Made by a program: the position numbers and the translations under genes. Under the pieces are notes generated by a model that was given only the letters and a program-made list of their open reading frames with translations, made no database searches and was not told where the DNA came from. Positions 1,332 to 34,072 of a stretch of DNA of 64,000 nt are shown one piece after another (the stretch's first letter is position 1; every line of letters starts with the position of its first letter). Where the stretch lies: positions 1 through 64,000 of IMG/VR virus record IMGVR_UViG_3300020477_001008; one strand, 5' to 3'.

Positions 1332-1541
1332 ATGAGAAAAAATTATTATGGCAGGCGTAGATGGAATAGCAATACTAGAAATAATAAAAACCACTCAGTA
1401 ACTACGAACAGTAATAGTAAATCTGCGTTTGCGAAATACAAAGAATTATTAGATAGAGCCTCAAAGGCAAACGATCCTATCGAAAAGATAAACCTACAGC
1501 AATCTGCTGAACATTGGCTAAAGGTTAGCAAGGAGGCCTAG
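1332..1541 (+). CDS. DUF4167-like small protein (alphaproteobacterial family)
   Basis: R/N-rich N-terminus followed by KYxxLxxxA...D..E...Q.AEHW helix pattern. Confidence 0.65.
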   Translation: MRKNYYGRRRWNSNTRNNKNHSVTTNSNSKSAFAKYKELLDRASKANDPIEKINLQQSAEHWLKVSKEA

Positions 1542-2764
1542 TGAAACCTTATTGCATAGCACCATTTGTACATTTATATCAACATAGTCAAAGTCTAGAT
1601 GATAGAGTATGTTGCATTAGTAAAATAAACAAAGCTGATGATAATAGAGATAATGGTGTTGATAATAACTTACAAAGCAAATGGGAAAATGAATATTATC
1701 AAGACATTAGAAAAAGAATGTTAGAACCAGGTTCAGATTTACCTGAATGTGCAGAATGTATTAGGTTAGAAAAACAAGGACAAACTAGCGATAGATTAAA
1801 TTTTGAAAGTCGTTTTAAAAATCAATATATAGAATTTAATACTATAACTGGTAACCAATATAACCATCCATTAGATTATGATTTACGTCCAGGAAACTTA
1901 TGTAATTTAGGTTGTAGAATGTGTAGTCCAATGAGTAGTACACAATTAAGTAAAGAATATAAAAAACATAAAGATGATTTTAATGATCTTGTTCCTGAAA
2001 CTTTTTTTACAATGGAAGATGGTTGTGATTGGGACTATAAAGAAAACCTAGATTGGATTAAAGAAAATTTGTTATCAGGTAAAACAAATAGAATTAAATT
2101 CCTTGGCGGTGAACCTACAATAATGCCAGGTGTATTAGAATTACTTGACTTTATGATTGATAATAGTTTAACACGAACATCATTATCTTTTACTACAAAT
2201 TGTACAAATGAAAACAGACATTTTGTTAGTAAAGTATCAAGGTTTACTGATGTATATTTTCATTTTTCAATAGATGGTATTGGTAGAACATTAGAATACA
2301 TTAGACATCCTGCTAAATGGAACAAAATAAATGAAAATATTAGAAAATTATCTTCTAATAAGAGTTGGATAGCACCAATGTGTAATACAACTATTCAAGC
2401 ATATAATATTCATCATTTAAAAGATTATGTTTATTGGTTAAAAGCATTAAACAAAATCAGACACGTAGAACTCAATACAGTAATAATAGATTATCCAAGT
2501 CATATGAGTTATAAAGTACTTCCAGTAGAATATAGAAATTGCTATATTGTTGATTTAATTAATGATCCTATAATGCAATGGGACGTAATAAAACAATCTA
2601 ATTTAAGAGCAAACCTTAAAACTATATTAGAAGATAAAACTGTTGAAGGTACTGATAAGTTTATAGAGCATACTAAAGCATTTGATAAAGTTAGGAATCA
2701 AAATATAAAAAATTATATTCCACAACTAGCTAGTTATTTTGGTCTTTCAAATAGGTATCAGTAA
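1541..2764 (+). CDS. Radical SAM protein with N-terminal SPASM/Twitch-like Cys cluster
   Basis: CNLGCRMC (CxxxCxxC), GGEP, N-terminal CxxP...CC...CxxC. Confidence 0.9.
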   Translation: MKPYCIAPFVHLYQHSQSLDDRVCCISKINKADDNRDNGVDNNLQSKWENEYYQDIRKRMLEPGSDLPECAECIRLEKQGQTSDRLNFESRFKNQYIEFNTITGNQYNHPLDYDLRPGNLCNLGCRMCSPMSSTQLSKEYKKHKDDFNDLVPETFFTMEDGCDWDYKENLDWIKENLLSGKTNRIKFLGGEPTIMPGVLELLDFMIDNSLTRTSLSFTTNCTNENRHFVSKVSRFTDVYFHFSIDGIGRTLEYIRHPAKWNKINENIRKLSSNKSWIAPMCNTTIQAYNIHHLKDYVYWLKALNKIRHVELNTVIIDYPSHMSYKVLPVEYRNCYIVDLINDPIMQWDVIKQSNLRANLKTILEDKTVEGTDKFIEHTKAFDKVRNQNIKNYIPQLASYFGLSNRYQ

Positions 2765-10812: not shown

Positions 10813-10820
10813 ATGTAAAA

Positions 10821-10868
10821 CGTTCATCTGGTATAACAGACGGAAGTAAGCACTAGCTGAAGGAACGC
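10821..10868 (+). ncRNA. Glutamine riboswitch (glnA / Downstream-peptide class)
   Basis: P1 CGTTC/GAACG, P2 TCTG/CAGA, junction CGGAAGTA, P3 AGC/GCT, GAA E-loop; 25 nt upstream of an ORF. Confidence 0.85.
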
Positions 10869-10893
10869 ACTTAACTGTAAAAAGGAGAGTGTT

Positions 10894-11067
10894 ATGAGAG
10901 ACACAAAAGGACTAGAAGCTTACACTGATAAGATCAATAAAGAAAAGAAGGCTAAGGCACTTAATAGAACACTACGTAAGAGTGTTGAAACGGGTGCAAA
11001 TGGCACACAGAACTATGTGGTCAAGAGTGGTAAGAACAAGGGTAAGATAGCTTCTAAAGGACAGTAG
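10894..11067 (+). CDS. Small basic protein under the riboswitch (57 aa, MRDTKGLEAYTDKINKEKKAKALNRTLRKSVETGANGTQNYVVKSGKNKGKIASKGQ)
   Basis: SD AAGGAG; hand translation. Confidence 0.75.
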   Translation: MRDTKGLEAYTDKINKEKKAKALNRTLRKSVETGANGTQNYVVKSGKNKGKIASKGQ

Positions 11068-11563
11068 AACTGAACATAAACAGGCTGGTTAACACACTGA
11101 AATAATGGGTGGTCAAAAGGTTAAGGTACATCTCTCTTCACCCAGAAAAAAGGTCATAAAAGTATATTCTAAGATCATAAAACCTACCGTAAGATATCTA
11201 CAGACCCAAAAAGACCATTTTTCCCACCTTTCCCATCATACCCCAAGGTTCTGATATTGCCCCGCCTTTCAGGCTATGAGCCCATAACTGATAGGGGCCA
11301 AATATTCCCACCTTTCTCTATAATGATCTATATTGGTCAGAGAGCCGATCAGCACTACGTTGCTTTCAGCACTCGTGCTGTCTAGCTTGATGCCTGACCG
11401 TAATATGCTTCCTATGTTGGTTGACTCCGGGTACTCTACAATACCGTCAACCACAACATATAGTCACAGCAGTATCAGAGAGAAAACATTTTTTGAACAC
11501 ATTTCAAACACATTTGATCTAATGGTTACTAGATATAGTGCCGTTGCAGAATGAACACACCCC

Positions 11564-11607
11564 TCACGACAGCGTTTGACCTGGGATCTAGCGTAGGGCT
11601 CGCTATT
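11564..11607. repeat. Bipartite repeat copy 1: TCACGAC-N24-AGGGCTCGCTATT
   Basis: Identical arms and exact 24-nt spacer in three copies. Confidence 0.9.
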
Positions 11608-11634
11608 AGCTTTCGCTGGCTTGGCAAGAATTGG

Positions 11635-11662
11635 TTGACAAATCTGGATAATGTGTTAATAT
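11635..11662 (+). promoter_or_regulatory. Early sigma70-type promoter
   Basis: GGTTGACA-N16-TAATAT with TG. Confidence 0.75.
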
Positions 11663-11697
11663 AGTATTAATTAACCAATATAGCCGAGGAGGGCAAT

Positions 11698-11919
11698 ATG
11701 GCAACTAAAGATACATTATACAAATTCCACGCAACAGTAACAATGCCAAGCGGAAAGCAAAGACATTTGTTTACTAACGACACAGTTAGCAGAACAAAAG
11801 TTCTTATTAAAGCTGGTGTTGATATGAGTGGTGTTAATTGGATTGCATTAGACACTCCAATGACTAAAGCTCAGGTGATAGCTTCTGGGGAACCAGCAGT
11901 TACTACTCAAGTAGCTTAA
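11698..11919 (+). CDS. Hypothetical early protein (ends -VA)
   Basis: Own promoter; SD GAGGAGG. Confidence 0.75.
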   Translation: MATKDTLYKFHATVTMPSGKQRHLFTNDTVSRTKVLIKAGVDMSGVNWIALDTPMTKAQVIASGEPAVTTQVA

Positions 11920-11924
11920 CTCGT

Positions 11925-11968
11925 TCACGACGGTTTTGGCGGGCTCTTATCGCAGAGGGCTCGCTATT
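11925..11968. repeat. Bipartite repeat copy 2
   Basis: TCACGAC-ggttttggcgggctcttatcgcag-AGGGCTCGCTATT. Confidence 0.9.
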
Positions 11969-11978
11969 AAAGATCTAA

Positions 11979-12215
11979 TTATTCTGAATAATCCGGAAGA
12001 GGGCCACCATACTTCTTACCTTTGACTGTTTTATGGCCCACAGTCTTTCTTTTACCATCTAGCTTGTGTTCACGATCCGAATCACGTCTACGCAATCCTT
12101 TTGATCTACAGCTTGATAACCAGCTGGCAGGTAGCTCTGAATCAGGCTTACCACTCTTACACACTTTGGTAGGGGCTGGTCCTATATTGTCTGTTATGAT
12201 GTCTGACACTTTCAT
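11979..12215 (-). CDS. Small basic late protein (possible internal head protein)
   Basis: Perfect TATAAATA at 12221-12228 on the - strand; MKVSDIIT N-terminus resembles T4-type capsid-targeting leaders. Confidence 0.65.
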   Translation of the reverse strand: MKVSDIITDNIGPAPTKVCKSGKPDSELPASWLSSCRSKGLRRRDSDREHKLDGKRKTVGHKTVKGKKYGGPLPDYSE

Positions 12216-12234
12216 ACAAGTATTTATAAACGGT

Positions 12235-12278
12235 TCACGACAGTAATTAGAGTTGCAAAACCAAAAGGGCTCGCTATT
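12235..12278. repeat. Bipartite repeat copy 3
   Basis: TCACGAC-agtaattagagttgcaaaaccaaa-AGGGCTCGCTATT. Confidence 0.9.
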
Positions 12279-12408
12279 GCCTTTAAGGGGTGGGGTGGTT
12301 TAAATGTACTACCTTTGTACTTTTGAACTTAAACCATTGATTCTTGGTGGTTTGGGGCCTGTTTTGTTTGTTTCAGTCTGCGTAGTCCCGGCCCCTGAGA
12401 CGAAGTTT

Positions 12409-12771
12409 CTAGTTTAGATATAATGGTCCAGTCCACTTAACAATGTAGCCTGGCACAAACACATTACCTCTAGGCTGATTGAGTGCTGGTGCATTCCAAC
12501 CTGCCGCTTTAAGGATGTCTCCTCTTTTGAAGTGTTTGAAGTCGTGCTTATTAACGAAGCCCCAAACTGATCTGCTTCCACCTCTATCGTGTCTTATGAT
12601 TTTGATGAACTTCTGTCTTGAAGAATCTTTTACTTCCCAACCATCATCAAACTCTTTAATCATATTCTCGTTTACTTCAGGTATGTCACCGTTTGCTTTG
12701 GTGTTCCATTTACGATAGTCTGCTTTAGCTTGATCTATCATTGTGTCTATTGCTTTGTATATGTCGTCCAT
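12409..12771 (-). CDS. Conserved-looking phage early protein (GDILKAAGWNAPA..RGN motif)
   Basis: SD GAGGA; own promoter at 12795-12822 (-). Confidence 0.75.
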   Translation of the reverse strand: MDDIYKAIDTMIDQAKADYRKWNTKANGDIPEVNENMIKEFDDGWEVKDSSRQKFIKIIRHDRGGSRSVWGFVNKHDFKHFKRGDILKAAGWNAPALNQPRGNVFVPGYIVKWTGPLYLN

Positions 12772-12794
12772 ATTATCCTCTCTGTTATATTATT

Positions 12795-12822
12795 AATATA
12801 CAGCAGATTGCATATTTGTCAA
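12795..12822 (-). promoter_or_regulatory. Early sigma70-type promoter (divergent)
   Basis: TTGACA-N16-TATATT on the - strand. Confidence 0.7.
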
Positions 12823-12824
12823 CC

Positions 12825-12868
12825 ACAACATATATGCCCTAACTATGGACCTCGATACTACATATAGT
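12825..12868. promoter_or_regulatory. Tandem NrdR-box-like pair (32-bp spacing)
   Basis: ACAACATATATG (12825) and ACTACATATAGT (12857) versus NrdR core aCwAtATaTwGt. Confidence 0.6.
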
Positions 12869-12894
12869 CTTTTATGTGCGTCAGCATAACACAC

Positions 12895-12922
12895 TTGCGT
12901 TTTTTAGCTTTGCTGGTATACT
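12895..12922 (+). promoter_or_regulatory. Promoter of the TC/CC-free operon (atypical -35)
   Basis: TTGCGT-N16-TATACT with TG. Confidence 0.65.
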
Positions 12923-12942
12923 AATAACAAAAAGGAGCAGTT

Positions 12943-13344
12943 ATGATATTATATACAAAACAATTTAGTAATGCAGTTAGACAAGTTATAAAGAAGCATA
13001 GAGCAAAAGTGCATACGAGATACACATTTGGCACGAGTGGGAGTTGCAGTATGTTTACTAGCGAAGGCAAAAGAAAGATTAGCTTTAACTGTATAGGAAC
13101 TAGAAAACAATTTAACTTAATAAGAAAAGATTTAGTTAAGTTGTTTGCAGGAACTTGGCAACAAAACTTTATGAAGTACAAATGGAACACGGACGGTTGG
13201 CACGATAAAAGAATGTTTAGGATAGAGGGAACTTGTTTGTTTGAGGACAAAACAAAGGAAGAGTTTGCAAAAATAATGAAACAAAGAACACACAACATAT
13301 TGTGGGGCAAGTTGGCAGGTGATACTACAGCTTGTGGAAATTAG
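12943..13344 (+). CDS. Basic, proline-free immediate-early protein
   Basis: SD AAGGAG; no Pro; Ser coded only by AGY. Confidence 0.8.
   Translation: MILYTKQFSNAVRQVIKKHRAKVHTRYTFGTSGSCSMFTSEGKRKISFNCIGTRKQFNLIRKDLVKLFAGTWQQNFMKYKWNTDGWHDKRMFRIEGTCLFEDKTKEEFAKIMKQRTHNILWGKLAGDTTACGN
13292..13335. promoter_or_regulatory. Tandem NrdR-box-like pair (32-bp spacing)
   Basis: acACAACATATTGTgg (13292) and ACTACAGCTTGT (13324), upstream of the -35 at 13349. Confidence 0.6.
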
Positions 13345-13348
13345 GGGG

Positions 13349-13376
13349 TTGACAAGTAGCAATACTATGTTAAATT
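13349..13376 (+). promoter_or_regulatory. Early promoter
   Basis: TTGACA-N16-TAAATT with TG. Confidence 0.75.
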
Positions 13377-13382
13377 AATATT

Positions 13383-13505
13383 ATGGTTAGCAAGTTAATA
13401 AAATTAATTACAAGTTATTACGCAAGTTATTATGCAAGTATTATTTTAATATTTGTAATACTAGCAATAATAGGTGCGTTGCTAACAGCTTGTACACTAA
13501 TATAG
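13383..13505 (+). CDS. Membrane microprotein, paralog A (MVSKLIKLITSYYASYYASIILIFVILAIIGALLTACTLI)
   Basis: Probably leaderless; aligns ungapped with 16123 and 23940 ORFs. Confidence 0.65.
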   Translation: MVSKLIKLITSYYASYYASIILIFVILAIIGALLTACTLI

Positions 13506-13515
13506 AGAGGACTAT

Positions 13516-14139
13516 ATGCAAAAGCAAAAGTATACAAAAGAAGAGATAGAAGCAGGCGTTAAGTTTTTACAAAACGCAAATGTAAACTTTGACTATGACA
13601 AAGACGATATGCAAATTAACTTTAGTATAGACGTTGGTTGCAGAATATGGACGGACGGTAGTAGCATATGGAGTAGGGGAGTTGTTAAAGGAGTTAAAGT
13701 TAGTAGCTTGAGTTTAACAGCAACACACAGCAAAGATATGTACGACAAAAAGGATTGGGCAAGTTTAAAGGACGAGGACTTGTACTGGAGTGGTGGACTT
13801 ACGGGTTATGCTTTTTACGATGGTAGTGGCAAAGACGGAACGTGGTACGATGGCGTTGACGACGAAAGTGCATTAATTAATAGGAACACTAGTAAACATA
13901 GCGACGGCTTAATTTACACGGACGACGGCTTTGTTAAAAATTTAATAAAGTACTTAAGAGACGAGTGTAGCTTTGATACTAGCTTTACAGACTTAACAAA
14001 GTTTTTGGACTTTAGCTATAGCGAACAAGGGATGCAGGATATGGAAACTGTAAACTTTGACGTGGAAATGGACGGGGACTTTTGGATTAAGTGTAATGAC
14101 GAGCTAGTTAAGTTTTTACATAACAAAAAAGTAGCTTAA
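13516..14139 (+). CDS. Acidic, proline-free immediate-early protein (207 aa, ends -VA)
   Basis: SD GAGAGG; no Pro. Confidence 0.85.
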   Translation: MQKQKYTKEEIEAGVKFLQNANVNFDYDKDDMQINFSIDVGCRIWTDGSSIWSRGVVKGVKVSSLSLTATHSKDMYDKKDWASLKDEDLYWSGGLTGYAFYDGSGKDGTWYDGVDDESALINRNTSKHSDGLIYTDDGFVKNLIKYLRDECSFDTSFTDLTKFLDFSYSEQGMQDMETVNFDVEMDGDFWIKCNDELVKFLHNKKVA

Positions 14140-14348
14140 TGAGTACACGTTACAGATACGACAAGGCAACGGACAATTACGTTGAGGACGAATGGCAAGG
14201 TACTATACTAGAACAATGCGAAGCACTTGTACTAGCATTAAAGGAAGAAAGTGCTACAGAAGACAATGTAGCACGAAAGGAAGAATTGGAAATGCTAGTA
14301 GGGGAAATAGAATATAGAATAGGAGCAGGAGGAAACTATTTAATTTAA
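14139..14348 (+). CDS. Small acidic proline-free protein
   Basis: TAATG coupling. Confidence 0.7.
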   Translation: MSTRYRYDKATDNYVEDEWQGTILEQCEALVLALKEESATEDNVARKEELEMLVGEIEYRIGAGGNYLI

Positions 14349-14354
14349 TATGAT

Positions 14355-14397
14355 ACTAGTTGTAGTGTTAGCTTTAATAGTTGGCACTACATATAGT
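14355..14397. promoter_or_regulatory. Tandem NrdR-box-like pair (31-bp spacing)
   Basis: ACTAGTTGTAGT (14355) and ACTACATATAGT (14386), upstream of the -35 at 14410. Confidence 0.6.
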
Positions 14398-14470
14398 GAA
14401 TTTAAGCGGTTGACAAATAATAGATGTGTGTTAATTTAAAACAATAAACCAAACGAGAGGTAAAAACAAA

Positions 14471-14761
14471 ATGGTAAAACTAGCAAAAGAATCAATCATA
14501 GACAGTATATTAAAAATTACTGACACTAATGAATTGAGAGAAATCTCAAATGCTTTACACCAACATAGAACTTATATGAATGCTCAAGCAACAAGAAATT
14601 TTGTTGTAGGAGATAAAGTAGAGTTCGAAGGCAGAAGAGGTAGAACTGTACAAGGTGTAGTTAAGAGAGTTAAAATCAAAAACATTATAGTTGAAGAAAC
14701 TAATTCACCGTTTGGTGGAAGATGGAATGTTTCTGCTTCATTACTAAAGAAAGTAGCATAA
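14471..14761 (+). CDS. Early protein with SH3/KOW-like C-terminal domain
   Basis: VGDKVEF..GVVKRV..WNVSASLL; SD GAGAGG. Confidence 0.7.
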   Translation: MVKLAKESIIDSILKITDTNELREISNALHQHRTYMNAQATRNFVVGDKVEFEGRRGRTVQGVVKRVKIKNIIVEETNSPFGGRWNVSASLLKKVA

Positions 14762-14955
14762 TGCCAAAAGGGATTTTAACTAACAAGCAAGTAGACAAAT
14801 TAATAGAACTTGGGCCGGACATAATCGCCGGCCTAGAGTGCAATTTAAATGGCTCAGGATTACCTTGTAGAACTGATAGATTATATGCGGTTGACAAAAT
14901 GATTGCTTATGTTAAACTACACGGATACAAAGTAATAGACAAGGATAAAAAATGA
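14761..14955 (+). CDS. Hypothetical early protein (start MPKGIL)
   Basis: TAATG coupling. Confidence 0.55.
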   Translation: MPKGILTNKQVDKLIELGPDIIAGLECNLNGSGLPCRTDRLYAVDKMIAYVKLHGYKVIDKDKK

Positions 14956-15188
14956 GAGACTTGACTGAACAGCAAAAGGCTTTACTAGACTTACACAAAC
15001 ACATTGGGCGAGCAGAACAGCTTCCTAACAATGTGTGGGAGGAGTTAGTAGAACTAAATGATACAGAAGTTTTGTATCAAAATGTCAATTGTTATTTAGG
15101 AGACAATTACGACAGTGATGCTCCAGTTTATAATTGGAGTAAGAATCAATTAAACTTTAACTTTACAGAGGAGGATGCAAATGCCTAA
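14952..15188 (+). CDS. Hypothetical early protein
   Basis: ATGA overlap; SD AAGGA. Confidence 0.65.
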   Translation: MRDLTEQQKALLDLHKHIGRAEQLPNNVWEELVELNDTEVLYQNVNCYLGDNYDSDAPVYNWSKNQLNFNFTEEDANA

Positions 15189-15399
15189 ACCAAAAAAGCA
15201 AAAGTACGAGTATGAACCATTACCGGAAGATTACATCGACTTTGATGAAGACGGTACTTTACTAGATGAAGAGTCTAGTGATGTATTAGATCAAGATGTA
15301 GAAAGTCTTGATGAACTACAAGAAGACGAAGAGTATAAAGAAGAAGATGGCTACGGCGGAGGCGTCGAAGGCATTTACAATTGGGACGAATGGAATTAA
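15181..15399 (+). CDS. Small acidic early protein
   Basis: SD GAGGAGG. Confidence 0.65.
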   Translation: MPKPKKQKYEYEPLPEDYIDFDEDGTLLDEESSDVLDQDVESLDELQEDEEYKEEDGYGGGVEGIYNWDEWN

Positions 15400-15464
15400 C
15401 AGGTTGACAAAACGTTAACTTGTGTTACATTTAAATTATATTAACTTTTACAGAGAGAGAAAAT

Positions 15465-15893
15465 ATGTCTACAAGATCAAGAATAGCAGTACAGCAACCA
15501 GACGGTAGCTGGGATTCAGTTTATCATCATTACGACGGATATCCTGAAGGAGTAGGTGTTTGCCTAAAGCAACACATTCCAACTTACGACAAAGCAGTTA
15601 AACTAGTAGCAGGTGGCGACATCAGTTACATAGATTGGGACACAGCAGTTGTAAAATATTATGCAAAGCGAAGTAGCTGGGACGATCCTAGAGGCGGTAG
15701 CGACGAAGCTTGGGAAGATGTGGCACCCATTAACAGTAAAACTTTTGCAGATTTAATTGACGTAACTAACGGTAGTAACGGATGTTATCTATACGTATAC
15801 TACTTTCAAACAAACGGTGTGCGTTGTTACAATCCCGATACAAGGGAAGAAGTGCGTATACCAAAATCGAGGAAAGAAGAAGAGGTAGCTTAA
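15465..15893 (+). CDS. Phage early protein of MSTRSxI...YxHxDGYP type
   Basis: MSTRSRIAV, YHHYDGYPEGVG; own promoter. Confidence 0.8.
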   Translation: MSTRSRIAVQQPDGSWDSVYHHYDGYPEGVGVCLKQHIPTYDKAVKLVAGGDISYIDWDTAVVKYYAKRSSWDDPRGGSDEAWEDVAPINSKTFADLIDVTNGSNGCYLYVYYFQTNGVRCYNPDTREEVRIPKSRKEEEVA

Positions 15894-16122
15894 TGTTTAC
15901 AACTTATATCTTTTTAGTGAAGTTAAGTTACTTAGGTCCTGTAGCTTTAATAATATAGAGCTACAGTACTACACGTACAAACAGTATAGCTATCAGATAG
16001 TATCTATAAGCTTAGAAACAACTGTTTGTACACAGTACAATTGTAACAGTATTGCTGAATGCATAATTGTACACAGTATAGTTGTAGGTCGTGGTTGACA
16101 GAATTGAAAAGGATGCTATACT

Positions 16123-16278
16123 ATGAGCAACAAAATTATTGGAGATAACGGAGAAATACAAGAAGTACCTTTAATCAAAAAAGGAATAACATTATTTCTT
16201 TGGTATCTCGTAGGTAGATACGGAGGTGTATTTTTAATATATTTCCTACTAGCTATAATAGGAGGCCTTGTGTCCTAG
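16123..16278 (+). CDS. Membrane microprotein, paralog B (51 aa)
   Basis: ...LIKKGITLFLWYLVGRYGGVFLIYFLLAIIGGLVS. Confidence 0.55.
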   Translation: MSNKIIGDNGEIQEVPLIKKGITLFLWYLVGRYGGVFLIYFLLAIIGGLVS

Positions 16279-16573
16279 TAGCTATTACAGAATTCGTATC
16301 AGACGAAGTCTATATCGGTTTTGATGGAACTTCGTAGTCTTTGTTGTGATACAGAATGTAGTGGGGTTCTTCCCGGTGCGGGTGTTATTACCACTTAAAA
16401 TCCAAATAACAACGATGCGAGTCATTTCAGGGATAGAGACTCTTGCTAAATGAAATCCTTAGGGGTTTAGATTCATCACTAAACCCCACTAAACACTCCA
16501 TAAAATATAGAAAAAGTTGGTTGACAATTACCCGAAATATGCTATATTAGTTTATATAACAGAGGAGTTGAAA

Positions 16574-17131
16574 ATGCCAAATTGGTGCAATAACAATATA
16601 ACAATAAGAGCCCCTAAAAAGAAACTAGATAAGATAGTTAAAGCGGCTAAAAACGGCGAGTTGCTAAATCATTTTTTACCAATGCCTAAAGTATTAGACG
16701 GCACAACAGCCGATGGTTCTAAAGACAAAGCAATGATAAAGAAGACAGGCTACTCAGACTGGTATAGTTGGAGAGTTGATAATTGGGGAACTAAATGGGA
16801 CATAGATATCTATGAAGGTTCTATTAGTAGAGTAGATGACGAAACGGTGCAGTTTGGTTTTGACTCTGCTTGGGCTCCACCCATTGATGCCTACAAGGCA
16901 GTTCAAGATAAACATCAAGACATTTCAATCACGGCTTACTATTACGAACCAGGAATGGACTTTGCTGGAGAGTATGCAGACGGTGTGATAAGTGAAGTTA
17001 ATGTGTCAGATGAAAAGGATTCTTACTTTGAAGATACCGCACTAGGTAAAGAGTTAGATGCTTACTACGGTATATTAGAATCTAGAGCTGAATGGGAAGC
17101 ACAAAGAAATGCGGAGGTTCATAGTGCCTGA
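16574..17131 (+). CDS. DUF1281/YubB-like ferredoxin-fold protein
   Basis: MPNWCNN, WYSWRVDNWGTKWD, FDSAWAPP, YYEPG; SD GAGGAG. Confidence 0.8.
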   Translation: MPNWCNNNITIRAPKKKLDKIVKAAKNGELLNHFLPMPKVLDGTTADGSKDKAMIKKTGYSDWYSWRVDNWGTKWDIDIYEGSISRVDDETVQFGFDSAWAPPIDAYKAVQDKHQDISITAYYYEPGMDFAGEYADGVISEVNVSDEKDSYFEDTALGKELDAYYGILESRAEWEAQRNAEVHSA

Positions 17132-17492
17132 TAATCTACCAACTGATAAAAAAGATTGTAGAGAACAAGAAGAAGTGATCGTTGATAAGGACGGTCACTT
17201 TTTAAGTCACTATGTTTTAGCAGAAAGATTACTACAAGTTGAGTATGCTCAAATTAGAGATGAGATACGCCACGAAGCAACAAGTGATACTTTAACATAT
17301 ATCCTTGAAGGTGGCTTTAGAGGTTTTCACAAATTTACTAAACAGCAACAAAGAGATGAATGGCTTGATGGTGCAGAAGAGAAATGGTTTCACTTGTACG
17401 AAACAGGAGAACTACCTTGGGAACCATATGAAGAAGATCCTATTGCTATTAGAGACCACGCAAAGCGAAAGGAGAACAATGCCACTATTTAA
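17124..17492 (+). CDS. Hypothetical early protein
   Basis: GTG start after GGAGG. Confidence 0.6.
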   Translation: MPDNLPTDKKDCREQEEVIVDKDGHFLSHYVLAERLLQVEYAQIRDEIRHEATSDTLTYILEGGFRGFHKFTKQQQRDEWLDGAEEKWFHLYETGELPWEPYEEDPIAIRDHAKRKENNATI

Positions 17493-17670
17493 ATTATTCG
17501 CAGATGTAGACTCAGTTGTTGAAGAAGCAGAACATCTTGAACAAATATTCAAAGATGGTATCGAAGCAGAAAACGATGATGAGGCTTATAAGATAGTTGA
17601 GAAGAAAGTAAAAGAGTTAAACTTTGGTGGACCTTACTACACTTTAAGTGATCAATGGGAGGACGACTAA
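17479..17670 (+). CDS. Hypothetical early protein (start MPLFKL)
   Basis: SD AGGAG. Confidence 0.6.
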   Translation: MPLFKLFADVDSVVEEAEHLEQIFKDGIEAENDDEAYKIVEKKVKELNFGGPYYTLSDQWEDD

Positions 17671-18218
17671 TGGAATTTTTACCTAGAGAAGAAGACAACA
17701 GATTAGATGATAGAACAGCAAGGTTCCACGCAAGAGTAATGAAAGAAGACCTTGCAACATTACCTTATGTTCCTACAACAGCAAACAGAGACATCAACAT
17801 AGCAAGAGCTCAAAACTATGTGACTTGGGACTATGATAAAGATATGTGGTGTTCGGTAGATCATTTAATGATGAACTTTTATATTAAAGCAACAACAGAT
17901 CAATCAAGAGAAGTATTAGAAGATATGATTAATAGAGATGTTGTTAGATTGATTAAAGGTCCTAGATATTATCAACAAGCAAAAGTATATTCTTTTATTG
18001 ATATGGATTATCCAGAAGATGAATCAATATATGATTTAGTCAAGAAGCCTAAGAAAGATAGAAAGGCACACAGCATTACTGGCGACGAAGGAGAGATTAC
18101 TTACTTTGTCACACTACACATTCAGGAATGTAATAACTTAGACCTTAGAGTTTATGATGAAGAAGGTCGTGGAGATTATTTTGACTTACACGGAACTAAC
18201 CTAGAGGAGGTAGCATAA
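17670..18218 (+). CDS. Hypothetical early protein (ends -VA)
   Basis: TAATG coupling, SD GGAGG. Confidence 0.7.
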   Translation: MEFLPREEDNRLDDRTARFHARVMKEDLATLPYVPTTANRDINIARAQNYVTWDYDKDMWCSVDHLMMNFYIKATTDQSREVLEDMINRDVVRLIKGPRYYQQAKVYSFIDMDYPEDESIYDLVKKPKKDRKAHSITGDEGEITYFVTLHIQECNNLDLRVYDEEGRGDYFDLHGTNLEEVA

Positions 18219-18466
18219 TGGCTTGGAGCCAAGAAGAAGAACACGAACATCTTAAATCACCTTACACGAAATATAGTATAGGTTTAGAATATACGGTATG
18301 GGTTGATGTAGATGCCAAAGATGAAAGCGAAGCAATAGATAAGGCCTGCAACGCAAATTATAGTTTGAATGTTTATATAGGTAAGAACCATCCTAGAGTA
18401 GCAGTTAGTACACACGCAGAACTAAATGAATATTCAGACCCAAAAGTATGGTGCGAAAATGACTAA
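18218..18466 (+). CDS. Hypothetical early protein (VxAxxxxEA motif)
   Basis: SD GAGGAGG. Confidence 0.65.
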   Translation: MAWSQEEEHEHLKSPYTKYSIGLEYTVWVDVDAKDESEAIDKACNANYSLNVYIGKNHPRVAVSTHAELNEYSDPKVWCEND

Positions 18467-18701
18467 AAAGAAATTAGATATGAAAGCAGTAAAGAAGGAG
18501 TTAGATAAGATGTTTGATGATTATGATTTAAGCAAAAAAGGTAGCGGAGCACCTAAAGGATCTAGATATATTGAAGTTGTAGTAGGTTTGCACATAGATG
18601 AAAACGCAGACCCCAGCGAGATCATTGAGAATGTTGATTATGATTTCAAGCACAAACACATAAAGGATATGTCGATACAAGATGTATTAACAGAGTTCTA
18701 G
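18459..18701 (+). CDS. Hypothetical early protein
   Basis: Overlaps upstream stop. Confidence 0.6.
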   Translation: MTKKKLDMKAVKKELDKMFDDYDLSKKGSGAPKGSRYIEVVVGLHIDENADPSEIIENVDYDFKHKHIKDMSIQDVLTEF

Positions 18702-18772
18702 TAAGGCACTAGATATAGTAGGTTGACAAATATTCAACTTATGTTAGTATTAAGAATAAGGAGAAGTTGCAA

Positions 18773-19156
18773 ATGACAAAAGAAATATATAACAAAGACA
18801 ATCCACACCAGGATATAGGTAAATCAAAATACAGAGTTAGAAGACATTACACTTGTTGGGTAGAATACGATGTAGTTGCTAATTCAAAAGAAGAAGCGGA
18901 AGATGCCGTTTTAGAACAAGGTGGCATTAACAAGATCGATTGGGAAGAAGGTTATCATAAAGATGAACCTGTAGAAGTTTATGCTAACGATTACAATTGG
19001 TCAGATTGTGATGATAGAGATTACGAAAAATACAGAGGACCATTAACAAACAAAGTTGCTGAATGTATTCCATACGAAGATAGTGATAGTATAGACTATC
19101 AAGATCCAGATTGGTCTACAGACGATTATGAATGGAAGAAAGAAGAAATAGCATAA
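18773..19156 (+). CDS. Hypothetical acidic early protein (VxAxSxEEA motif)
   Basis: Own promoter; SD AGGAG. Confidence 0.7.
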   Translation: MTKEIYNKDNPHQDIGKSKYRVRRHYTCWVEYDVVANSKEEAEDAVLEQGGINKIDWEEGYHKDEPVEVYANDYNWSDCDDRDYEKYRGPLTNKVAECIPYEDSDSIDYQDPDWSTDDYEWKKEEIA

Positions 19157-19281
19157 TGGCAAAACTTACTAAAAAAGAAAAGAAAGAATTATTAAAAGAG
19201 TTCTTACATTTCTGGCCACTATCAATAGTTGTCCCGGCTATGTTATTATTAATATTGTTTGGACCTTATATTGTAGGTTGA
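19156..19281 (+). CDS. Membrane microprotein (41 aa, MAKLTKKEKKELLKEFLHFWPLSIVVPAMLLLILFGPYIVG)
   Basis: TAATG coupling; hand translation. Confidence 0.55.
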   Translation: MAKLTKKEKKELLKEFLHFWPLSIVVPAMLLLILFGPYIVG

Positions 19282-19326: not shown

Positions 19327-20370
19327 GTGCAAATGCAAAAAAACGCAATCAAGATAAGAACAGGTATATTTGATAATCAACCTGTGCAAGATATCACTTT
19401 TAATTTAATAAAAGACTTCGAGCCTTATAAGACAGGCGGTGGCTTTTATTTGGTGGATGGGAAAACGGCAAGTGAAGGAGACTATCCTACTAGACCAATT
19501 AGAGTGAAAGTTAAAGATCCAGCTCACGCAGAGTACATAGCAGTAGAGCAACCTTTAACAAAAAAGAAAGTTGTTAAGAAGCCAACTGAAACTGATGAAC
19601 AAGCAATTGAAAGAATCAGAGAAAGGTTTGATATCTTAACTGAAATGGTAGAAGCAACACAAGAAGGAGTTGTCCGTGCAATGATAGTATCGGGACCTCC
19701 AGGTGTTGGTAAGTCATATGGTGTTGAAGCACAATTAAACAAGTCAGACATCTTTAATAAAATAGCAGACGAGAAGCCTAGGTTCGAAGTTGTTCGAGGG
19801 GCTATGTCCGCAATTGGTTTATACCAAAAACTATTCAAGTTCAGTAATGCAGGAAACATTCTTGTATTAGATGATTGTGATAGTATTTTATTTGATGATG
19901 TAGCACTTAACATCTTAAAGGCCGCACTAGACTCTAGTAAGAAAAGATATATCAGTTGGAATACTGAATCAAGAGTTCTTGCTAACGAAGGTGTTCCAGA
20001 TAGATTTGAATTTAGAGGATCAGTAATAATGATCACTAACATTAAATTTGATTATGTTAGATCTAAAAAATTACAAGATCACTTAAATGCAATTATGTCT
20101 AGATGTCACTACTTGGATCTTACAATGGATACAATTAGAGATAGAATGTTAAGATGTAAGCAGGTCCTTGCAGATGGAGAGATGTTAGCAGATTATATGT
20201 TCTCCAAAGAAAAGGAAAAAGAATTGATGGACTTTATGTGGGAATATAAAGAACATCTAAACGAGATTTCATTAAGGATGATCACTAAAATAGCCGACCT
20301 GGCAAAGATGTCAGATGATTGGAAGAAGTTAGCGAGAGTCACTTGTATGAAAAGGAGTTCCGCAGTATAG
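19327..20370 (+). CDS. AAA+ family ATPase
   Basis: Walker A GPPGVGKS, Walker B ILVLDD, ITN sensor-1, SR arginine finger. Confidence 0.9.
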   Translation: MQMQKNAIKIRTGIFDNQPVQDITFNLIKDFEPYKTGGGFYLVDGKTASEGDYPTRPIRVKVKDPAHAEYIAVEQPLTKKKVVKKPTETDEQAIERIRERFDILTEMVEATQEGVVRAMIVSGPPGVGKSYGVEAQLNKSDIFNKIADEKPRFEVVRGAMSAIGLYQKLFKFSNAGNILVLDDCDSILFDDVALNILKAALDSSKKRYISWNTESRVLANEGVPDRFEFRGSVIMITNIKFDYVRSKKLQDHLNAIMSRCHYLDLTMDTIRDRMLRCKQVLADGEMLADYMFSKEKEKELMDFMWEYKEHLNEISLRMITKIADLAKMSDDWKKLARVTCMKRSSAV

Positions 20371-29479: not shown

Positions 29480-30661
29480 CTATCTGATTTTAATGATATT
29501 CATTAGCTCTGATAACTCAGGAAACGTTTTATCAAATGACTCTACTCTTACTAAATCCATTCTGTATATGTGCCTCTTAAACTCACCTATTTTATTACTA
29601 CTATCGCTGTTTTCCATAAATTGAATTACTTGGTTGAATCCTTTATAATTATAGTCTAAAAGCCTATCTTTTACAACCTCTTTTAAGAAGCTTGGTAATG
29701 TAGAGATGTTATAATGCTTGGGTTCGTGTAATGTATTTAGGTATACTTTCATACCAAAATTATCAGTCCAGTCTATGAATTCAGGCAAGTAAAAAGCATT
29801 AAAAATATTAACAGTATGACATATAGATAAATCTAGCTTATTTGATTCATATGTTTGCCACACTTCTAAATTCTTCAGTACTTGCTCCCATTTAGCTGGG
29901 TGTCTTTGGTATTCAAATTGTTTACCTATACCATCGATACTAAAATGCACATCAACATATTTGAAATGCGGAAATATATTATCAAGAGCATCTAATGGCA
30001 ATTGTGTTCCATTTGTGTTATAGTGTAAGCTGATTTTATGTGCGTGTCCTTGTTTTATAATCTTATGTAAAAGATCCAAATGTTCTTTTATCATAAACGG
30101 TTCACCACCTGTAAAATCCAAATGCTCTAGTACAGGAATTAGTGATTCAACATTTTTCCAAAACACTTCTGATTTTTCTGGCCAATCAAGTCTTTCATAA
30201 AACTTAATATCTTTATCAATTATATCATATTTTCTTTGTTCTGAAATCCATTTAGATGAGTATTGTGGAGAACAAATTCTGCATTTAAGATTACATATAT
30301 TTCCAAGTTTTAAATCCAAATATCTAGGAGCAGATTCTTCCCATATGATTTTATCATTAATTAAATGCTTGTATTTTGCATTATCTCTTACTCTTTTAGA
30401 TGCTTTACCCGACATTTCTTCCATCCAACATCTATGGCATCCACGTGGTTGTGTGCCAGATAAAAACCTTTTACGTATAGTAGCTAGTTCTTCACTATTC
30501 CATATTTCTTGGAATTCTTCACGTTGGATTTTATATTCTTGACCATTTTCCTTTTTTAGTGTATCTTTATACATACAGCACGGTTTTACTGTGCCGTTAG
30601 GTTGGACTTCTAAACCAGTCCAAGGAAGAATACAAAAATTTTGAGGTAATTTATTATCCAT
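29480..30661 (-). CDS. Radical SAM/SPASM-Twitch protein
   Basis: CNLKCRIC, GGEP, FCILPW..PCC..CHRC. Confidence 0.9.
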   Translation of the reverse strand: MDNKLPQNFCILPWTGLEVQPNGTVKPCCMYKDTLKKENGQEYKIQREEFQEIWNSEELATIRKRFLSGTQPRGCHRCWMEEMSGKASKRVRDNAKYKHLINDKIIWEESAPRYLDLKLGNICNLKCRICSPQYSSKWISEQRKYDIIDKDIKFYERLDWPEKSEVFWKNVESLIPVLEHLDFTGGEPFMIKEHLDLLHKIIKQGHAHKISLHYNTNGTQLPLDALDNIFPHFKYVDVHFSIDGIGKQFEYQRHPAKWEQVLKNLEVWQTYESNKLDLSICHTVNIFNAFYLPEFIDWTDNFGMKVYLNTLHEPKHYNISTLPSFLKEVVKDRLLDYNYKGFNQVIQFMENSDSSNKIGEFKRHIYRMDLVRVESFDKTFPELSELMNIIKIR

Positions 30662-31848: not shown

Positions 31849-33072
31849 CTATGATTTAGCTATTTTTTCAAGATCTAGCAATTCTGGAAATATATCACGC
31901 CAATTTTCATTTCTTATATTATCTAAACGATTTGTGATTTCATACCAGTCTTTTATTAAGTGAGAGTAGTCAGCTTCATACAAATAACTTATTAGCGATT
32001 CATATCTTGTATGATTAGCATCTGTATTTTCTTTCATCCACGTTTGAGCATTAGTCCATTTCTCTGCAAGTTTATCTTTCATATCTTTTGGTAGTATTTG
32101 TATTCTCAAATGCTCAGGAGTTTGCAAAGGATTTAATAAACTATGTGGACCAACCCATTCCTTTTTAATCCAATCAATATGAAAATCTGAAACGTGAAAA
32201 CTATTAAACACGTCAACACACGACGCAACAAAAAAGAAAGCCCTAGGACATTTTTCAAAAACATTTTTTCTATTTTCTTCAACTTGCTCCCAGCTTTGCC
32301 CAGCACGAAGATATTCACCTCGCTTATGTGTTGCATCTAAACTAGCACCAATTTCTACATATTCAAACTTGTCCCATTCTTTGAATACGTCCATTCCTTT
32401 ATAAATTACTTGGCTAAAGTTTGTATTGTACTTTAGTCTTACGTGAAACATTTTCTTTTCTACTAATTTTTTTAATATTCTATAATGCTCTTCCATTATT
32501 AATGGTTCACCACCGGCAAAATATACTTCTTCTAAACCATCTACATATGGCTCAACTACTTCCCAAAATCTTTTTTCGTCTTTGTATGGTCTAATAACTT
32601 TAGAGTGATCTGGTTTACTGAATAATTTAGTTTGGTCTTCATACCAGCTTGATGATAAATCTGGACCACAAGTTCTACATTTAAAGTTACATAAGTTACT
32701 AAATCTAAAATCAATGTAAGGTAAATTAACTTTGTCAACAGTACCATCTTCTTTAGTTGATTCTACAACATCCCAATGATGATTTAATTTTTCATTAGAC
32801 CAAGTTCTAGTTGTATTAATACTATGTCTTTCTTGTTCGTAACAACGTGTACAGATCTTATTAGCTTTTCCATTTAGTAAGTCTTTACGTAATTGTTTTT
32901 GTTGCGGAGAATTCCAAGCTTGTTCTAATGTTATTTCTTTTAAGTTACCCATTATATCGTTACTATCACTCATACAACAAGTCAATACTCTACCATCTGG
33001 CCACGTGTGTAAATGTGTCCACGGTATCATACAAAAAGTTTTTGATTTAAGTAACTTATCTTTATCTAGCAT
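31849..33072 (-). CDS. Radical SAM/SPASM-Twitch protein
   Basis: CNFKCRTC, GGEP, FCMIPW..CC..CTRC. Confidence 0.9.
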   Translation of the reverse strand: MLDKDKLLKSKTFCMIPWTHLHTWPDGRVLTCCMSDSNDIMGNLKEITLEQAWNSPQQKQLRKDLLNGKANKICTRCYEQERHSINTTRTWSNEKLNHHWDVVESTKEDGTVDKVNLPYIDFRFSNLCNFKCRTCGPDLSSSWYEDQTKLFSKPDHSKVIRPYKDEKRFWEVVEPYVDGLEEVYFAGGEPLIMEEHYRILKKLVEKKMFHVRLKYNTNFSQVIYKGMDVFKEWDKFEYVEIGASLDATHKRGEYLRAGQSWEQVEENRKNVFEKCPRAFFFVASCVDVFNSFHVSDFHIDWIKKEWVGPHSLLNPLQTPEHLRIQILPKDMKDKLAEKWTNAQTWMKENTDANHTRYESLISYLYEADYSHLIKDWYEITNRLDNIRNENWRDIFPELLDLEKIAKS

Positions 33073-34072
33073 TGATTTCGCTTTTCCAACTTGGAATAAG
33101 CAGATTTTCAAACACACTTCTGTTATGAGAAAGTTTTGCTTTTATATCATCTTGTTGATATAATTCTGTCCATTCCTCAGGTGTTTTATGTACAAGAGTT
33201 TCTATCTCGTTCCACATAGCACTATATCTTTCATTGTAAGGTAAACTATCAAATGCTTCGTGGTTATATAATTCTGTGTAAGGTTCAAAGCCATTATCTA
33301 TTAAGAACTTCATTGTATCCTTACAACCGTGAACGATAAAAATTTTATTGTACAAAATTGGTTTCCAAGTTTTTTCTGTTATAAACAAACTAGTATCACT
33401 AACAATACTTTCATTTACTATTTCAAATCCCGCATAGTGATAATTTGGAGGTAATATTTCTTGATTTTGTCCTTCGTCAATTTCTTTACCTGTAAAATCT
33501 AATTTAAGATCATCTCCTTGAAATTTTGGATTAGTAAAATAATGATCAGGCACATTATTACCATATCTATTAATCCAAGATATCTCGCCAAATCCATCTA
33601 ATCCATTATCAAACAAATCAGTGACTAATTTTGCTCTATGTGTTTTTGCCGCTCCATTTAAACAAATAAATCTTCTAGTTTTTCTTTCATATGCTTTGGG
33701 TTGTTTAATACTTTTATTTTGTTTGTTTATTATTGTTCTGGATAGTAATTCAAAAGGTGCTGACACTATGTTTACAGGAAAATCTTTACGTTCAGTTCCT
33801 GCAAACCATTTATCTACATTTTCTTTTAGATTAACATCAGCCATTACTAAACTAGCATTATCTTCAGGCCAACCTTCTAAAGCTTCACGTACATACGGTA
33901 AAAAATTTTCTTTTGTTTGGAAATGTATTTCACCTTCCCACACTCTTTTAATTACAATATGATGTGTTTCTTTTTTATCTTGATTATTACGAATCCAATA
34001 ATTTAGGGCATTAAGTTGTCCTAAAATATCGTGTGTACAATCTAAATCAACTATGTGAAGTTCTTTATTCAT
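33062..34072 (-). CDS. Glycosyltransferase-like protein (E..F.TEK..KP family)
   Basis: FICLNG...HR, NES..FITEKTWKPI, GF. Confidence 0.6.
   Translation of the reverse strand: MNKELHIVDLDCTHDILGQLNALNYWIRNNQDKKETHHIVIKRVWEGEIHFQTKENFLPYVREALEGWPEDNASLVMADVNLKENVDKWFAGTERKDFPVNIVSAPFELLSRTIINKQNKSIKQPKAYERKTRRFICLNGAAKTHRAKLVTDLFDNGLDGFGEISWINRYGNNVPDHYFTNPKFQGDDLKLDFTGKEIDEGQNQEILPPNYHYAGFEIVNESIVSDTSLFITEKTWKPILYNKIFIVHGCKDTMKFLIDNGFEPYTELYNHEAFDSLPYNERYSAMWNEIETLVHKTPEEWTELYQQDDIKAKLSHNRSVFENLLIPSWKSEINAR

Follow-up and report, generated by a model that had tools for sequence, protein, structure and literature searches.

Paired NrdR-type boxes upstream of predicted early promoters in an uncultured marine jumbo phage

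An uncultured marine jumbo phage carries, just upstream of several of its predicted earliest promoters, paired DNA boxes that match the binding site of the bacterial repressor NrdR in sequence and spacing. We analyzed a window of 64,000 nucleotides (positions 1 to 64,000 of IMG/VR record IMGVR_UViG_3300020477_001008) together with the whole record of 242,646 bp. NrdR senses dATP/ATP, and our best reading is that the NrdR of the host binds these boxes and thereby couples a subset of early promoters to the dATP/ATP status of the cell. We found no published description of such sites in the open literature we searched.

Box pairs in the early region

The initial annotation had reported NrdR-like palindromes in pairs 31-32 bp apart, and additional single ones, mostly just upstream of a -35. 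This observation was confirmed, and all of its coordinates hold. Two boxes do not strictly match ACWANNNNTWGT: the one given there as 12825 has its G shifted by one position, and 18677 has T in place of G. The loose pattern occurs 57 times in 242,646 bp, and 14 of these occurrences lie in 11.45-19.22 kb. The stricter ACWANATATWGT occurs 6 times, all in that region.

To score the sites independently, a position weight matrix (PWM) was built only from ten validated NrdR boxes of E. coli and S. coelicolor (PMC13584703). Among 242,631 positions of the phage record, ranks 1-9 are all boxes of this kind. Eight of them lie in 11.4-18.7 kb and had already been flagged; the ninth (219972) heads a further pair that had been missed. 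A scan against a randomized background had been proposed beforehand, with an equal frequency of the motif across the genome as the outcome that would speak against NrdR. Sites scoring at least 12.9 number 8 inside the 8.1-kb region and 1 in the other 234.5 kb, whereas Markov simulations gave about 4.5 per whole genome. Pairs at 31-32 bp were observed four times against 0.03 expected, with a maximum of 1 in 60 simulations. At a score of 10 or more, the only spacings seen within 10-90 bp are 31, 32, 32 and 75.

Two single boxes lie at the left edge of the early region. The first, CCACAACATATAGTCA (11451-11466; PWM 14.9, rank 5), is located in a non-coding stretch of roughly 440 bp. The second, TTACTAGATATAGTGC (11526-11541; PWM 12.9, rank 9), is 75 bp from the first and 93 bp upstream of the promoter at 11635. 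In a relative (L004), the ortholog of the downstream 73-aa gene also has a strong box upstream of its promoter.

The first pair (12823-12870) consists of CCACAACATATATGCC and ATACTACATATAGTCT (PWM 11.9 and 15.2) with a 16-bp linker, i.e. boxes at 12823/12855 with a center-to-center distance of 32 bp, between divergent promoters. Its first box abuts the -35 of a sigma70-type promoter on the minus strand (12795-12822; TTGACA, 16 nt, TATATT) for the minus-strand genes 12771-12409 (DUF7717-like) and 12215-11979. The second pair (13290-13337), ACACAACATATTGTGG and ATACTACAGCTTGTGG at 13290/13322, also has a 16-bp linker and a distance of 32 bp; it scores 17.5 (rank 1) and 13.7. It overlaps the 3' end of ORF 12943-13344 and lies 11 bp from the -35 of a plus-strand early promoter (13349-13376; TTGACA, 16 nt, TAAATT, TG-extended) driving 13383-13505 and 13516-14139.

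The third pair (14353-14399), ATACTAGTTGTAGTGT and GCACTACATATAGTGA at 14353/14384, has a 15-bp linker and a distance of 31 bp (PWM 13.3 and 16.5). It lies 10 bp from the -35 of a plus-strand early promoter of the same family (14410-14437; GGTTGACA...TGTGTTAATTT; our promoter families D1/D2) driving 14471-14761 and downstream genes. The fourth pair (18675-18721), ATACAAGATGTATTAA and GCACTAGATATAGTAG at 18675/18706, likewise has a 15-bp linker and a distance of 31 bp. Its distal box is weak (PWM 6.8, with T at position 13) and lies in the end of ORF 18426-18701, whereas the proximal box (PWM 15.2) is 1 bp from the -35 of a plus-strand early promoter (18723-18750; TTGACA, 16 nt, TAGTAT) driving 18767-19156. 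A degenerate single box, GGACCTTATATTGTAG (19261-19276; PWM only 6.6), is found 1 bp from the -35 of the promoter at 19278, which precedes the AAA-ATPase gene 19327-20370. It sits in the same position as box 18706 within a 54-nt duplicated promoter module (promoter family D4).

It also held that most boxes lie just upstream of a -35: the gap from the proximal 16-mer to TTGACA is 0 (12823, minus strand), 1 (18706), 1 (19261), 10 (14384) and 11 (13322). The additional pair at 219939/219972 has a spacing of 33 bp, i.e. a 17-bp linker, and AA middles, and it lies inside a coding region 63 bp upstream of the -35 of another promoter of the same family. We therefore regard it only as a possible site.

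One could suspect that the boxes are a chance feature of an A+T-rich genome (32% G+C) or a generic UP-element-like part of the promoter. The regular expression for NrdR boxes used in the field hits 718 times against about 690 expected by chance. It is too permissive at this G+C content and too strict for the deviant boxes, such that none of the four pairs counts as a pair because each has one deviant box; a PWM was used instead. However, eight of the nine top PWM sites fall in 3% of the genome. In contrast to an UP element, i.e. an A+T-rich tract at -40 to -60 without conserved G/C that is present at strong promoters generally, the boxes have a nearly invariant C4 and G13, and most promoters of the same family lack them. 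The PWM ranks, the spacings and the excess of pairs refute this reading.

Similarity to NrdR operators and conservation

The classification as NrdR-type box pairs is well supported by computation. In 25 boxes of the clade the published key positions are kept as follows: C4 in 25, A6 in 24, A8 in 24, T9 in 21, T11 in 24 and G13 in 23. Positions 7 and 10 vary freely, as in the published logo. As these 25 boxes were picked with the same PWM, this profile is partly circular. Each deviant box has a validated precedent, namely an AG middle, a TT middle and a G shifted to position 14. The linkers of 15-16 bp equal the linker rule for NrdR and, as expected for an NrdR operator, are constrained in length rather than in sequence. 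The syntenic counterpart of the third pair in L004 keeps both boxes but has a changed linker and a 10-bp indel before the -35. Strain variants from RNA libraries change only the linker of this pair or restore A at box position 8. At the first pair, all listed changes among strain variants, a listing that is not exhaustive, fall in the linker or at flank positions 1-2 of box 2. A strain variant of the second pair skips 13314-13345, which leaves box 1 at the same 11-bp distance from the -35. Thus both the 10-bp indel and the 32-bp deletion preserve the phase between box and -35, the gap being 0-1 or 10-11 bp.

Several phage boxes are near-identical to validated ones from the nrd promoters of E. 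coli (nrdAB, nrdHIEF, nrdDG) and S. coelicolor (nrdAB, nrdRJ), which share the two 16-bp partial palindromes, the six key positions and the free linker of 15-16 bp. GCACTACATATAGTGA resembles the E. coli nrdEF box CAACTACATCTAGTAT, and ACACAACATATTGTGG resembles the synthetic consensus ACACAACATCTAGTGG. In contrast to these operators, the phage sites are found several times within 8 kb, upstream of small genes of unknown function that match no ribonucleotide reductase (RNR) family. Searches with Pfam, PHROGs and the protein atlas gave no function for the box-controlled genes. A single-protein search for more relatives of the 207-aa gene found none, and a profile search added one contig without boxes. 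The initial annotation was correct that no nrd gene is adjacent. The phage's own RNR gene lies at 166 kb and has no boxes; the one loose match upstream of it scores -5.2 and has no partner, and the idea that this gene is NrdR-controlled was rejected.

The proximal boxes abut the -35 or lie 10-11 bp from it and do not cover the -35/-10 as in most nrd promoters. [quoted passage not shown] Metatranscriptome contigs cover the early genes but cannot show transcription start sites. A precedent for the upstream arrangement exists in the S. pneumoniae nrdHEF promoter, where both NrdR boxes lie upstream of the -35 and -10, although the spacer there is 25-26 bp (four turns) and the gene is an RNR operon. 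A validated NrdR target outside the nrd regulon is P. aeruginosa topA, a chromosomal gene with a single box, which is activated by NrdR.

No NrdR or NrdR-type zinc ribbon was found in this record or in a complete 328-kb relative, and NrdR homologs occur in only 18 of 50,697 phage records. In bacteria NrdR is common: it scored over the cut-off in 250 of 301 sampled genomes of one phylum and in 9 of 14 control genomes. Whether the host of this phage encodes nrdR was not examined, since the host is not known, and nothing in our data shows it to be alphaproteobacterial. The window contains no tRNA and there is no psbA. Capsid-protein hits in bacterial MAGs look like binned phage contigs; three such MAGs had no NrdR hit, but they are incomplete. 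Nucleotide searches of the early region against cultured phages, near and distant, found nothing. Eight cultured phages (PA5oct, Vibrio 2.275.O, Sinorhizobium Phosso, Serratia BF, Listeria LMLPA3, a Staphylococcus Kay-type record, Bacillus PBC2 and KLEB27-3), four of them jumbo relatives of this phage, have no box pairs and thus gave no anchor to a known host.

Across IMG/VR, perfect box pairs occur in at least 118 contigs at the three-turn spacing and in at least 115 at four turns, against 6 at an off-phase spacing. This is the known integer-turn rule of NrdR. The pairs are almost never next to reductase genes.

Possible roles of the boxes

The interpretation given in the initial annotation, that the phage gates its earliest genes on the dNTP status of the host or titrates NrdR to derepress host RNR, was partly supported: the assignment as NrdR-type box pairs stands, whereas both functional alternatives are untested. 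We consider it more likely than not, with moderate confidence, that the boxes are operators for the host's own NrdR, the zinc-ribbon/ATP-cone protein that binds DNA as a tetramer only when loaded with dATP plus ATP. In this view each pair offers two 16-bp half-palindromic boxes three helical turns apart, on a fixed face of the helix directly upstream of the -35 of a strong sigma70-type early promoter. The most likely direction is repression when dATP is high, by occluding or bending the -35/upstream region, which would be relieved when the cell is consuming dNTPs. Against this reading speak the non-RNR genes downstream, the position of the boxes upstream of the -35, the deviant box in each of the four pairs, the lack of such pairs in the eight cultured phages checked and the irregular box spacings in a complete relative (G004). 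Our analysis demonstrates that the sites exist far beyond chance, that they match NrdR sites in sequence profile, spacing and linker behavior, that they are conserved in relatives and that the phage encodes no NrdR; that NrdR is the binder, the direction of regulation and the physiological logic are inferences, and binding, including its dependence on dATP, was not assayed. NrdRs from different phyla bind each other's boxes, so one consensus can serve many hosts.

Alternatively, the boxes could be operators for a different protein, either a phage-encoded early-shutoff regulator or another host factor, with a coincidental or convergent resemblance to NrdR boxes. The boxes flank non-RNR genes, and a DNA binder could be hidden among the early proteins, most of which have no assigned function. 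In a complete relative (G004) several boxes stand 21, 45 or 55 bp apart, which is not an NrdR spacing. Other operator-like repeats exist in the same region, for example TTGTACACAGTAYARTTGTA twice upstream of the promoter at 16095. However, a coincidental match would have to hit all six key positions, the free positions 7 and 10 and the variable linker of 15-16 bp. The recurrence of the same consensus and of the three- and four-turn rule in hundreds of unrelated viral contigs of 26-49% G+C argues for a universally conserved binder rather than a lineage-specific phage protein, and the earliest promoters must fire before any phage protein is made. We consider this alternative unlikely.

It also seems unlikely that the boxes serve only for titration, i.e. 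that replicating phage DNA soaks up NrdR and derepresses the host nrd operons with little effect on the neighboring promoters. There are nine strong boxes per genome, which replication would multiply many-fold, and as the phage's own RNR gene carries no boxes, the phage would gain from the loss of NrdR and lose nothing. Yet a sponge needs no fixed position, and the precise helical phasing relative to the -35 favors promoter control over a pure titration role. Moreover, the boxes occur only at the leftmost early promoters and are not spread over the genome, and a single infecting genome presumably cannot titrate much before replication.

A further possibility is that NrdR activates these promoters from a site centered near -43 or -54, so that early genes would fire best when dATP is plentiful. 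According to our calculation the box centers sit where class I/II activators bind, and the example of topA means that repression is not assured. However, the promoters are already near consensus (TTGACA, 16 nt, TG-extended -10) and should not need an activator, sister promoters of the same family work without boxes, and all paired-box NrdR sites studied so far repress. Activation is thus improbable, but the direction of regulation is not settled.

Implications for phage gene expression

That a phage borrows a host sensor-repressor by carrying its operator has a parallel in phage functions controlled by LexA. Here the signal would be dATP/ATP and not DNA damage, the phage is a lytic-type jumbo myovirus, and the sites are at early promoters. 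The early region also resembles that of T4-type phages, where tandem strong host-type sigma70 promoters, including early-promoter cassettes in hyperplastic regions, stand in front of many small shuffled early genes; gene order differs between relatives. We know of no NrdR-type operator described for those cassettes.

NrdR is regarded as a near-dedicated repressor of RNR genes. Its operator architecture at the first early promoters of a widespread marine jumbo phage would extend the NrdR regulon to viruses, and the same would follow from the phase-specific box pairs in hundreds of other viral contigs. Tentatively, many unrelated phages could wire the host's dATP/ATP sensor into promoters of non-reductase genes, so that host nucleotide status would act as a general checkpoint for phage gene expression, the window analyzed here being a clear example with four operators stacked at its first early promoters. 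This would give phages a simple way to read whether the host is making or consuming DNA precursors, which bears on infection timing in slow-growing or cell-cycle-synchronized ocean bacteria.

The early region and its boxes

The IMG/VR record, of which the window comprises the first 64 kb, is linear, 242,646 bp long and has 32% G+C; CheckV estimates it at 55% complete. Its major capsid protein is 65-70% identical to those of Pseudomonas phage PA5oct, Sinorhizobium phage Phosso, Vibrio phage 2.275.O and Serratia phage BF, which places it in the group of giant T4-related myoviruses of Proteobacteria. The host is not known, and nearly identical DNA is present in many marine metagenomes from several studies. 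A weak hint about the host comes from a glutamine riboswitch (Rfam RF01739, 61.4 bits, E 9e-12) at 10819-10871 (+), just upstream of a 57-aa ORF (10894-11067) that has an ortholog in the complete relative, as such riboswitches are reported in phages of SAR11, OM43 and Prochlorococcus (PMC9004378). A MAG labelled Candidatus Neomarinimicrobiota holds two contigs of 153 kb and 335 kb (PBPT01000082.1, PBPT01000016.1) whose capsid gene is 73% identical to that of this phage, but these are probably binned phage genomes and not evidence of a host. Elsewhere in the window, at least four ORFs, at 1541-2764 (+), 29480-30661 (-), 31849-33117 (-) and 46099-47484 (-), match one radical-SAM PHROG family (phrog_14086), an unusual number for one phage segment. 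A very long ORF of 2046 aa at 57689-63829 (-), presumably a giant virion or tail-fibre protein, lies beside an 839-aa ORF with structural-protein matches.

From about 11.4 to 23.7 kb the plus strand carries many small genes, each preceded by a near-consensus sigma70-type promoter of one family, which consists of GGTTGACA, a 16-nt spacer and a TG-extended -10 such as TGTTAATAT. Almost none of the encoded proteins has a known function, and this is a typical host-takeover early region. Contigs from RNA libraries of the same samples cover several of these genes, which is compatible with expression but does not prove it. Other repeated elements were found in the same region. Three copies of AGGGCTCGCTATT at 11595, 11956 and 12266, each inside a small hairpin (TAGCGTAGGGCTCGCTA) and preceded by a TCACGACAG-like word, sit at gene ends and may be terminators or another regulatory element. 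Two copies of TTGTACACAGTAYARTTGTA, 41 bp apart at 16026-16086, lie just upstream of the promoter at 16095 and form a second operator-like repeat, unrelated to the NrdR-type boxes.

Every box listed in the initial annotation is present at its position. A weight-matrix scan against a shuffled background had been proposed there as a check, and an equal frequency of the motif across the genome had been named as one of the outcomes that would refute it. To avoid circularity, we built the position weight matrix (PWM) only from the ten E. coli and S. coelicolor boxes whose NrdR binding was measured in PMC13584703, and scanned the whole record with it. The nine best of 242,631 positions are 13290, 14384, 12855, 18706, 11451, 13322, 14353, 219972 and 11526. 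Eight sites scoring at least 12.9 lie in the 8.1-kb region and one lies in the other 234.5 kb, whereas first-order Markov simulations give about 4.5 such sites per genome. Four pairs 31-32 bp apart were observed against 0.03 expected, and among sites scoring at least 10 the only distances seen within 10-90 bp are 31, 32, 32 and 75. The observation is therefore real and far beyond chance. The site at 219972 belongs to a further NrdR-like pair (219939-219987) inside the 3' end of a 389-aa ORF, 63 bp upstream of an early-type promoter at 220051; it has a 17-bp linker and both boxes have AA middles.

In the literature an NrdR site is defined as two partly palindromic 16-bp boxes with highly conserved C4, A6, A8, T9, T11 and G13, separated by 15-16 bp of free sequence. 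A spacing one helical turn longer is also accepted, and both boxes are required. We compared 25 boxes from this phage and its two nearest relative lineages. C4 is kept in 25, A6 in 24, A8 in 24, T9 in 21, T11 in 24 and G13 in 23 of them; positions 7 and 10 vary freely, and positions 5 and 12 are A or T. As these boxes were chosen with the PWM, the profile is partly circular. Each of the four pairs has one perfect and one deviant box, the deviations being a G moved to position 14 (12823), an AG middle (13322), a TT middle (14353) and T at position 13 (18675). The first three have measured precedents that still bind NrdR, whereas the fourth is a weak box. Because of these deviations, the strict regular expression used in the field does not call any of the four as a pair. 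That expression is also uninformative at 32% G+C, giving 718 hits against about 690 expected.

Position relative to promoters and conservation

The gap between the promoter-proximal 16-mer and TTGACA is 0 bp for the minus-strand promoter at 12822, 1 bp at 18723 and at 19278, 10 bp at 14410 and 11 bp at 13349. These values differ by one helical turn, and further observations show the same phasing. In the relative locus L004, the syntenic pair in front of the ortholog of gene 14471-14761 keeps both boxes, but has a changed linker and a 10-bp deletion that brings the box flush with the -35. One strain variant skips exactly 32 bp (13314-13345) at the 13290/13322 pair, which removes one box plus one linker and leaves the remaining box again 11 bp from the -35; the support for this variant is thin, with one contig in each of two runs. 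Other strain variants in public runs, at 14136-14339, lack the 69-aa gene 14139-14348 while keeping the box pair behind it. Most sister promoters of the same family have no boxes, and the boxes are therefore not part of the promoter itself.

Among 58 related loci found through the AAA-ATPase gene, only the closest lineages carry high-scoring boxes in their early regions. These are G002/G003, with 72% identity, and the complete 328-kb genome G004, with 66%; in both, the boxes are concentrated at the left edge of the region. In G004 some boxes are 21, 45 or 55 bp apart, which does not fit NrdR and for which we have no explanation. Next to its box cluster G004 has a roughly 1-kb non-coding stretch (560-650 and 700-760 of its locus L006, the former at about 127.6 kb of the genome) with about nine tandem 10-bp units (..CTCAAAG..) and repeated GAGATGTTGYA...TACAACA palindromes, which could be an origin or another control region. 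Among strain variants in four DNA runs, all changes examined around the 12823/12855 pair fall either in the 16-bp linker (five substitutions and three indels) or at the two non-conserved flank positions of box 2. None of the changes examined falls in box 1 or in the core of box 2; as the examination was not exhaustive, this is suggestive only.

The candidate binding protein and box pairs in other viral contigs

The record contains one ATP-cone, which belongs to the phage's own reductase large subunit at 166.0-168.3 kb. Profile searches with the full NrdR model and with the NrdR zinc-ribbon model found nothing significant in this record, in two partial relatives or in the complete relative. NrdR homologs occur in only 18 of 50,697 phage records, mostly as short unannotated pieces. 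In bacteria, by contrast, NrdR is common: it scores over the cut-off in 9 of 14 control genomes and in 250 of 301 genomes sampled across one phylum, and the literature gives 77% of bacterial genomes. If NrdR is the binder, it is the host's. The promoter of the phage's own reductase has no box pair, so the phage enzyme would escape this control.

To examine whether such pairs occur more widely, IMG/VR was scanned for exact pairs of a strict box (ACTANATATWGT and ACWANATATWGT) at three spacings. The three-turn spacing gave at least 118 contigs, which carry 104 different linkers. The four-turn spacing gave at least 115 contigs, which carry 60 different linkers. In contrast, an off-phase spacing five bases longer than three turns gave 6, about what composition predicts. 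This is the integer-helical-turn rule measured for NrdR. The flanking genes are very diverse, as 139 ORFs fall into 103 clusters. Twenty representatives matched no reductase family; they include an NAD-dependent DNA ligase, a nuclease, portal proteins and an RNA polymerase alpha-CTD-like protein. A class I/II reductase large subunit was detectable in 1 of 118 loci and 0 of 114 loci, whereas class III enzymes and small subunits were not searched. So NrdR-type operators at non-reductase genes appear to be widespread in viral contigs, and we found no description of this in the literature searched.

A possible role of NrdR at early promoters

The analysis confirms that the boxes exist where the initial annotation had placed them. 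Its reading of them as NrdR-type sites is strongly supported by computation, yet it is unproven, as binding was not assayed and the host is not known; its proposals for their function, gating of the earliest genes by the dNTP status of the host or titration of NrdR, are untested. What acts on the promoters, in which direction and to what end is inferred, and the physiological role is plausible but undecided. A pure titration role fits the number of sites but not their fixed phase with promoters. Activation cannot be excluded, since the box centres lie near -43 or -54 and NrdR activates P. aeruginosa topA through a single box. The operator and the sensor system are already known; what is new is the setting, namely phage early promoters of non-reductase genes.

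NrdR loaded with ATP alone forms oligomers that do not bind DNA, whereas with dATP in its outer site it forms a tetramer that binds both boxes and bends the DNA sharply. Bound directly upstream of, and in phase with, the -35, it would most simply hinder sigma region 4 or the alpha C-terminal domains. The most likely interpretation is that this would repress the promoter when dATP is high relative to use, and that repression would lift when the cell is replicating and draining dNTPs. Two versions of the benefit to the phage can be inferred, and both are inference only: this would let the phage hold back a subset of its first genes in cells that are not synthesising DNA, and it could also shut those genes off once host DNA breakdown raises dNTPs.
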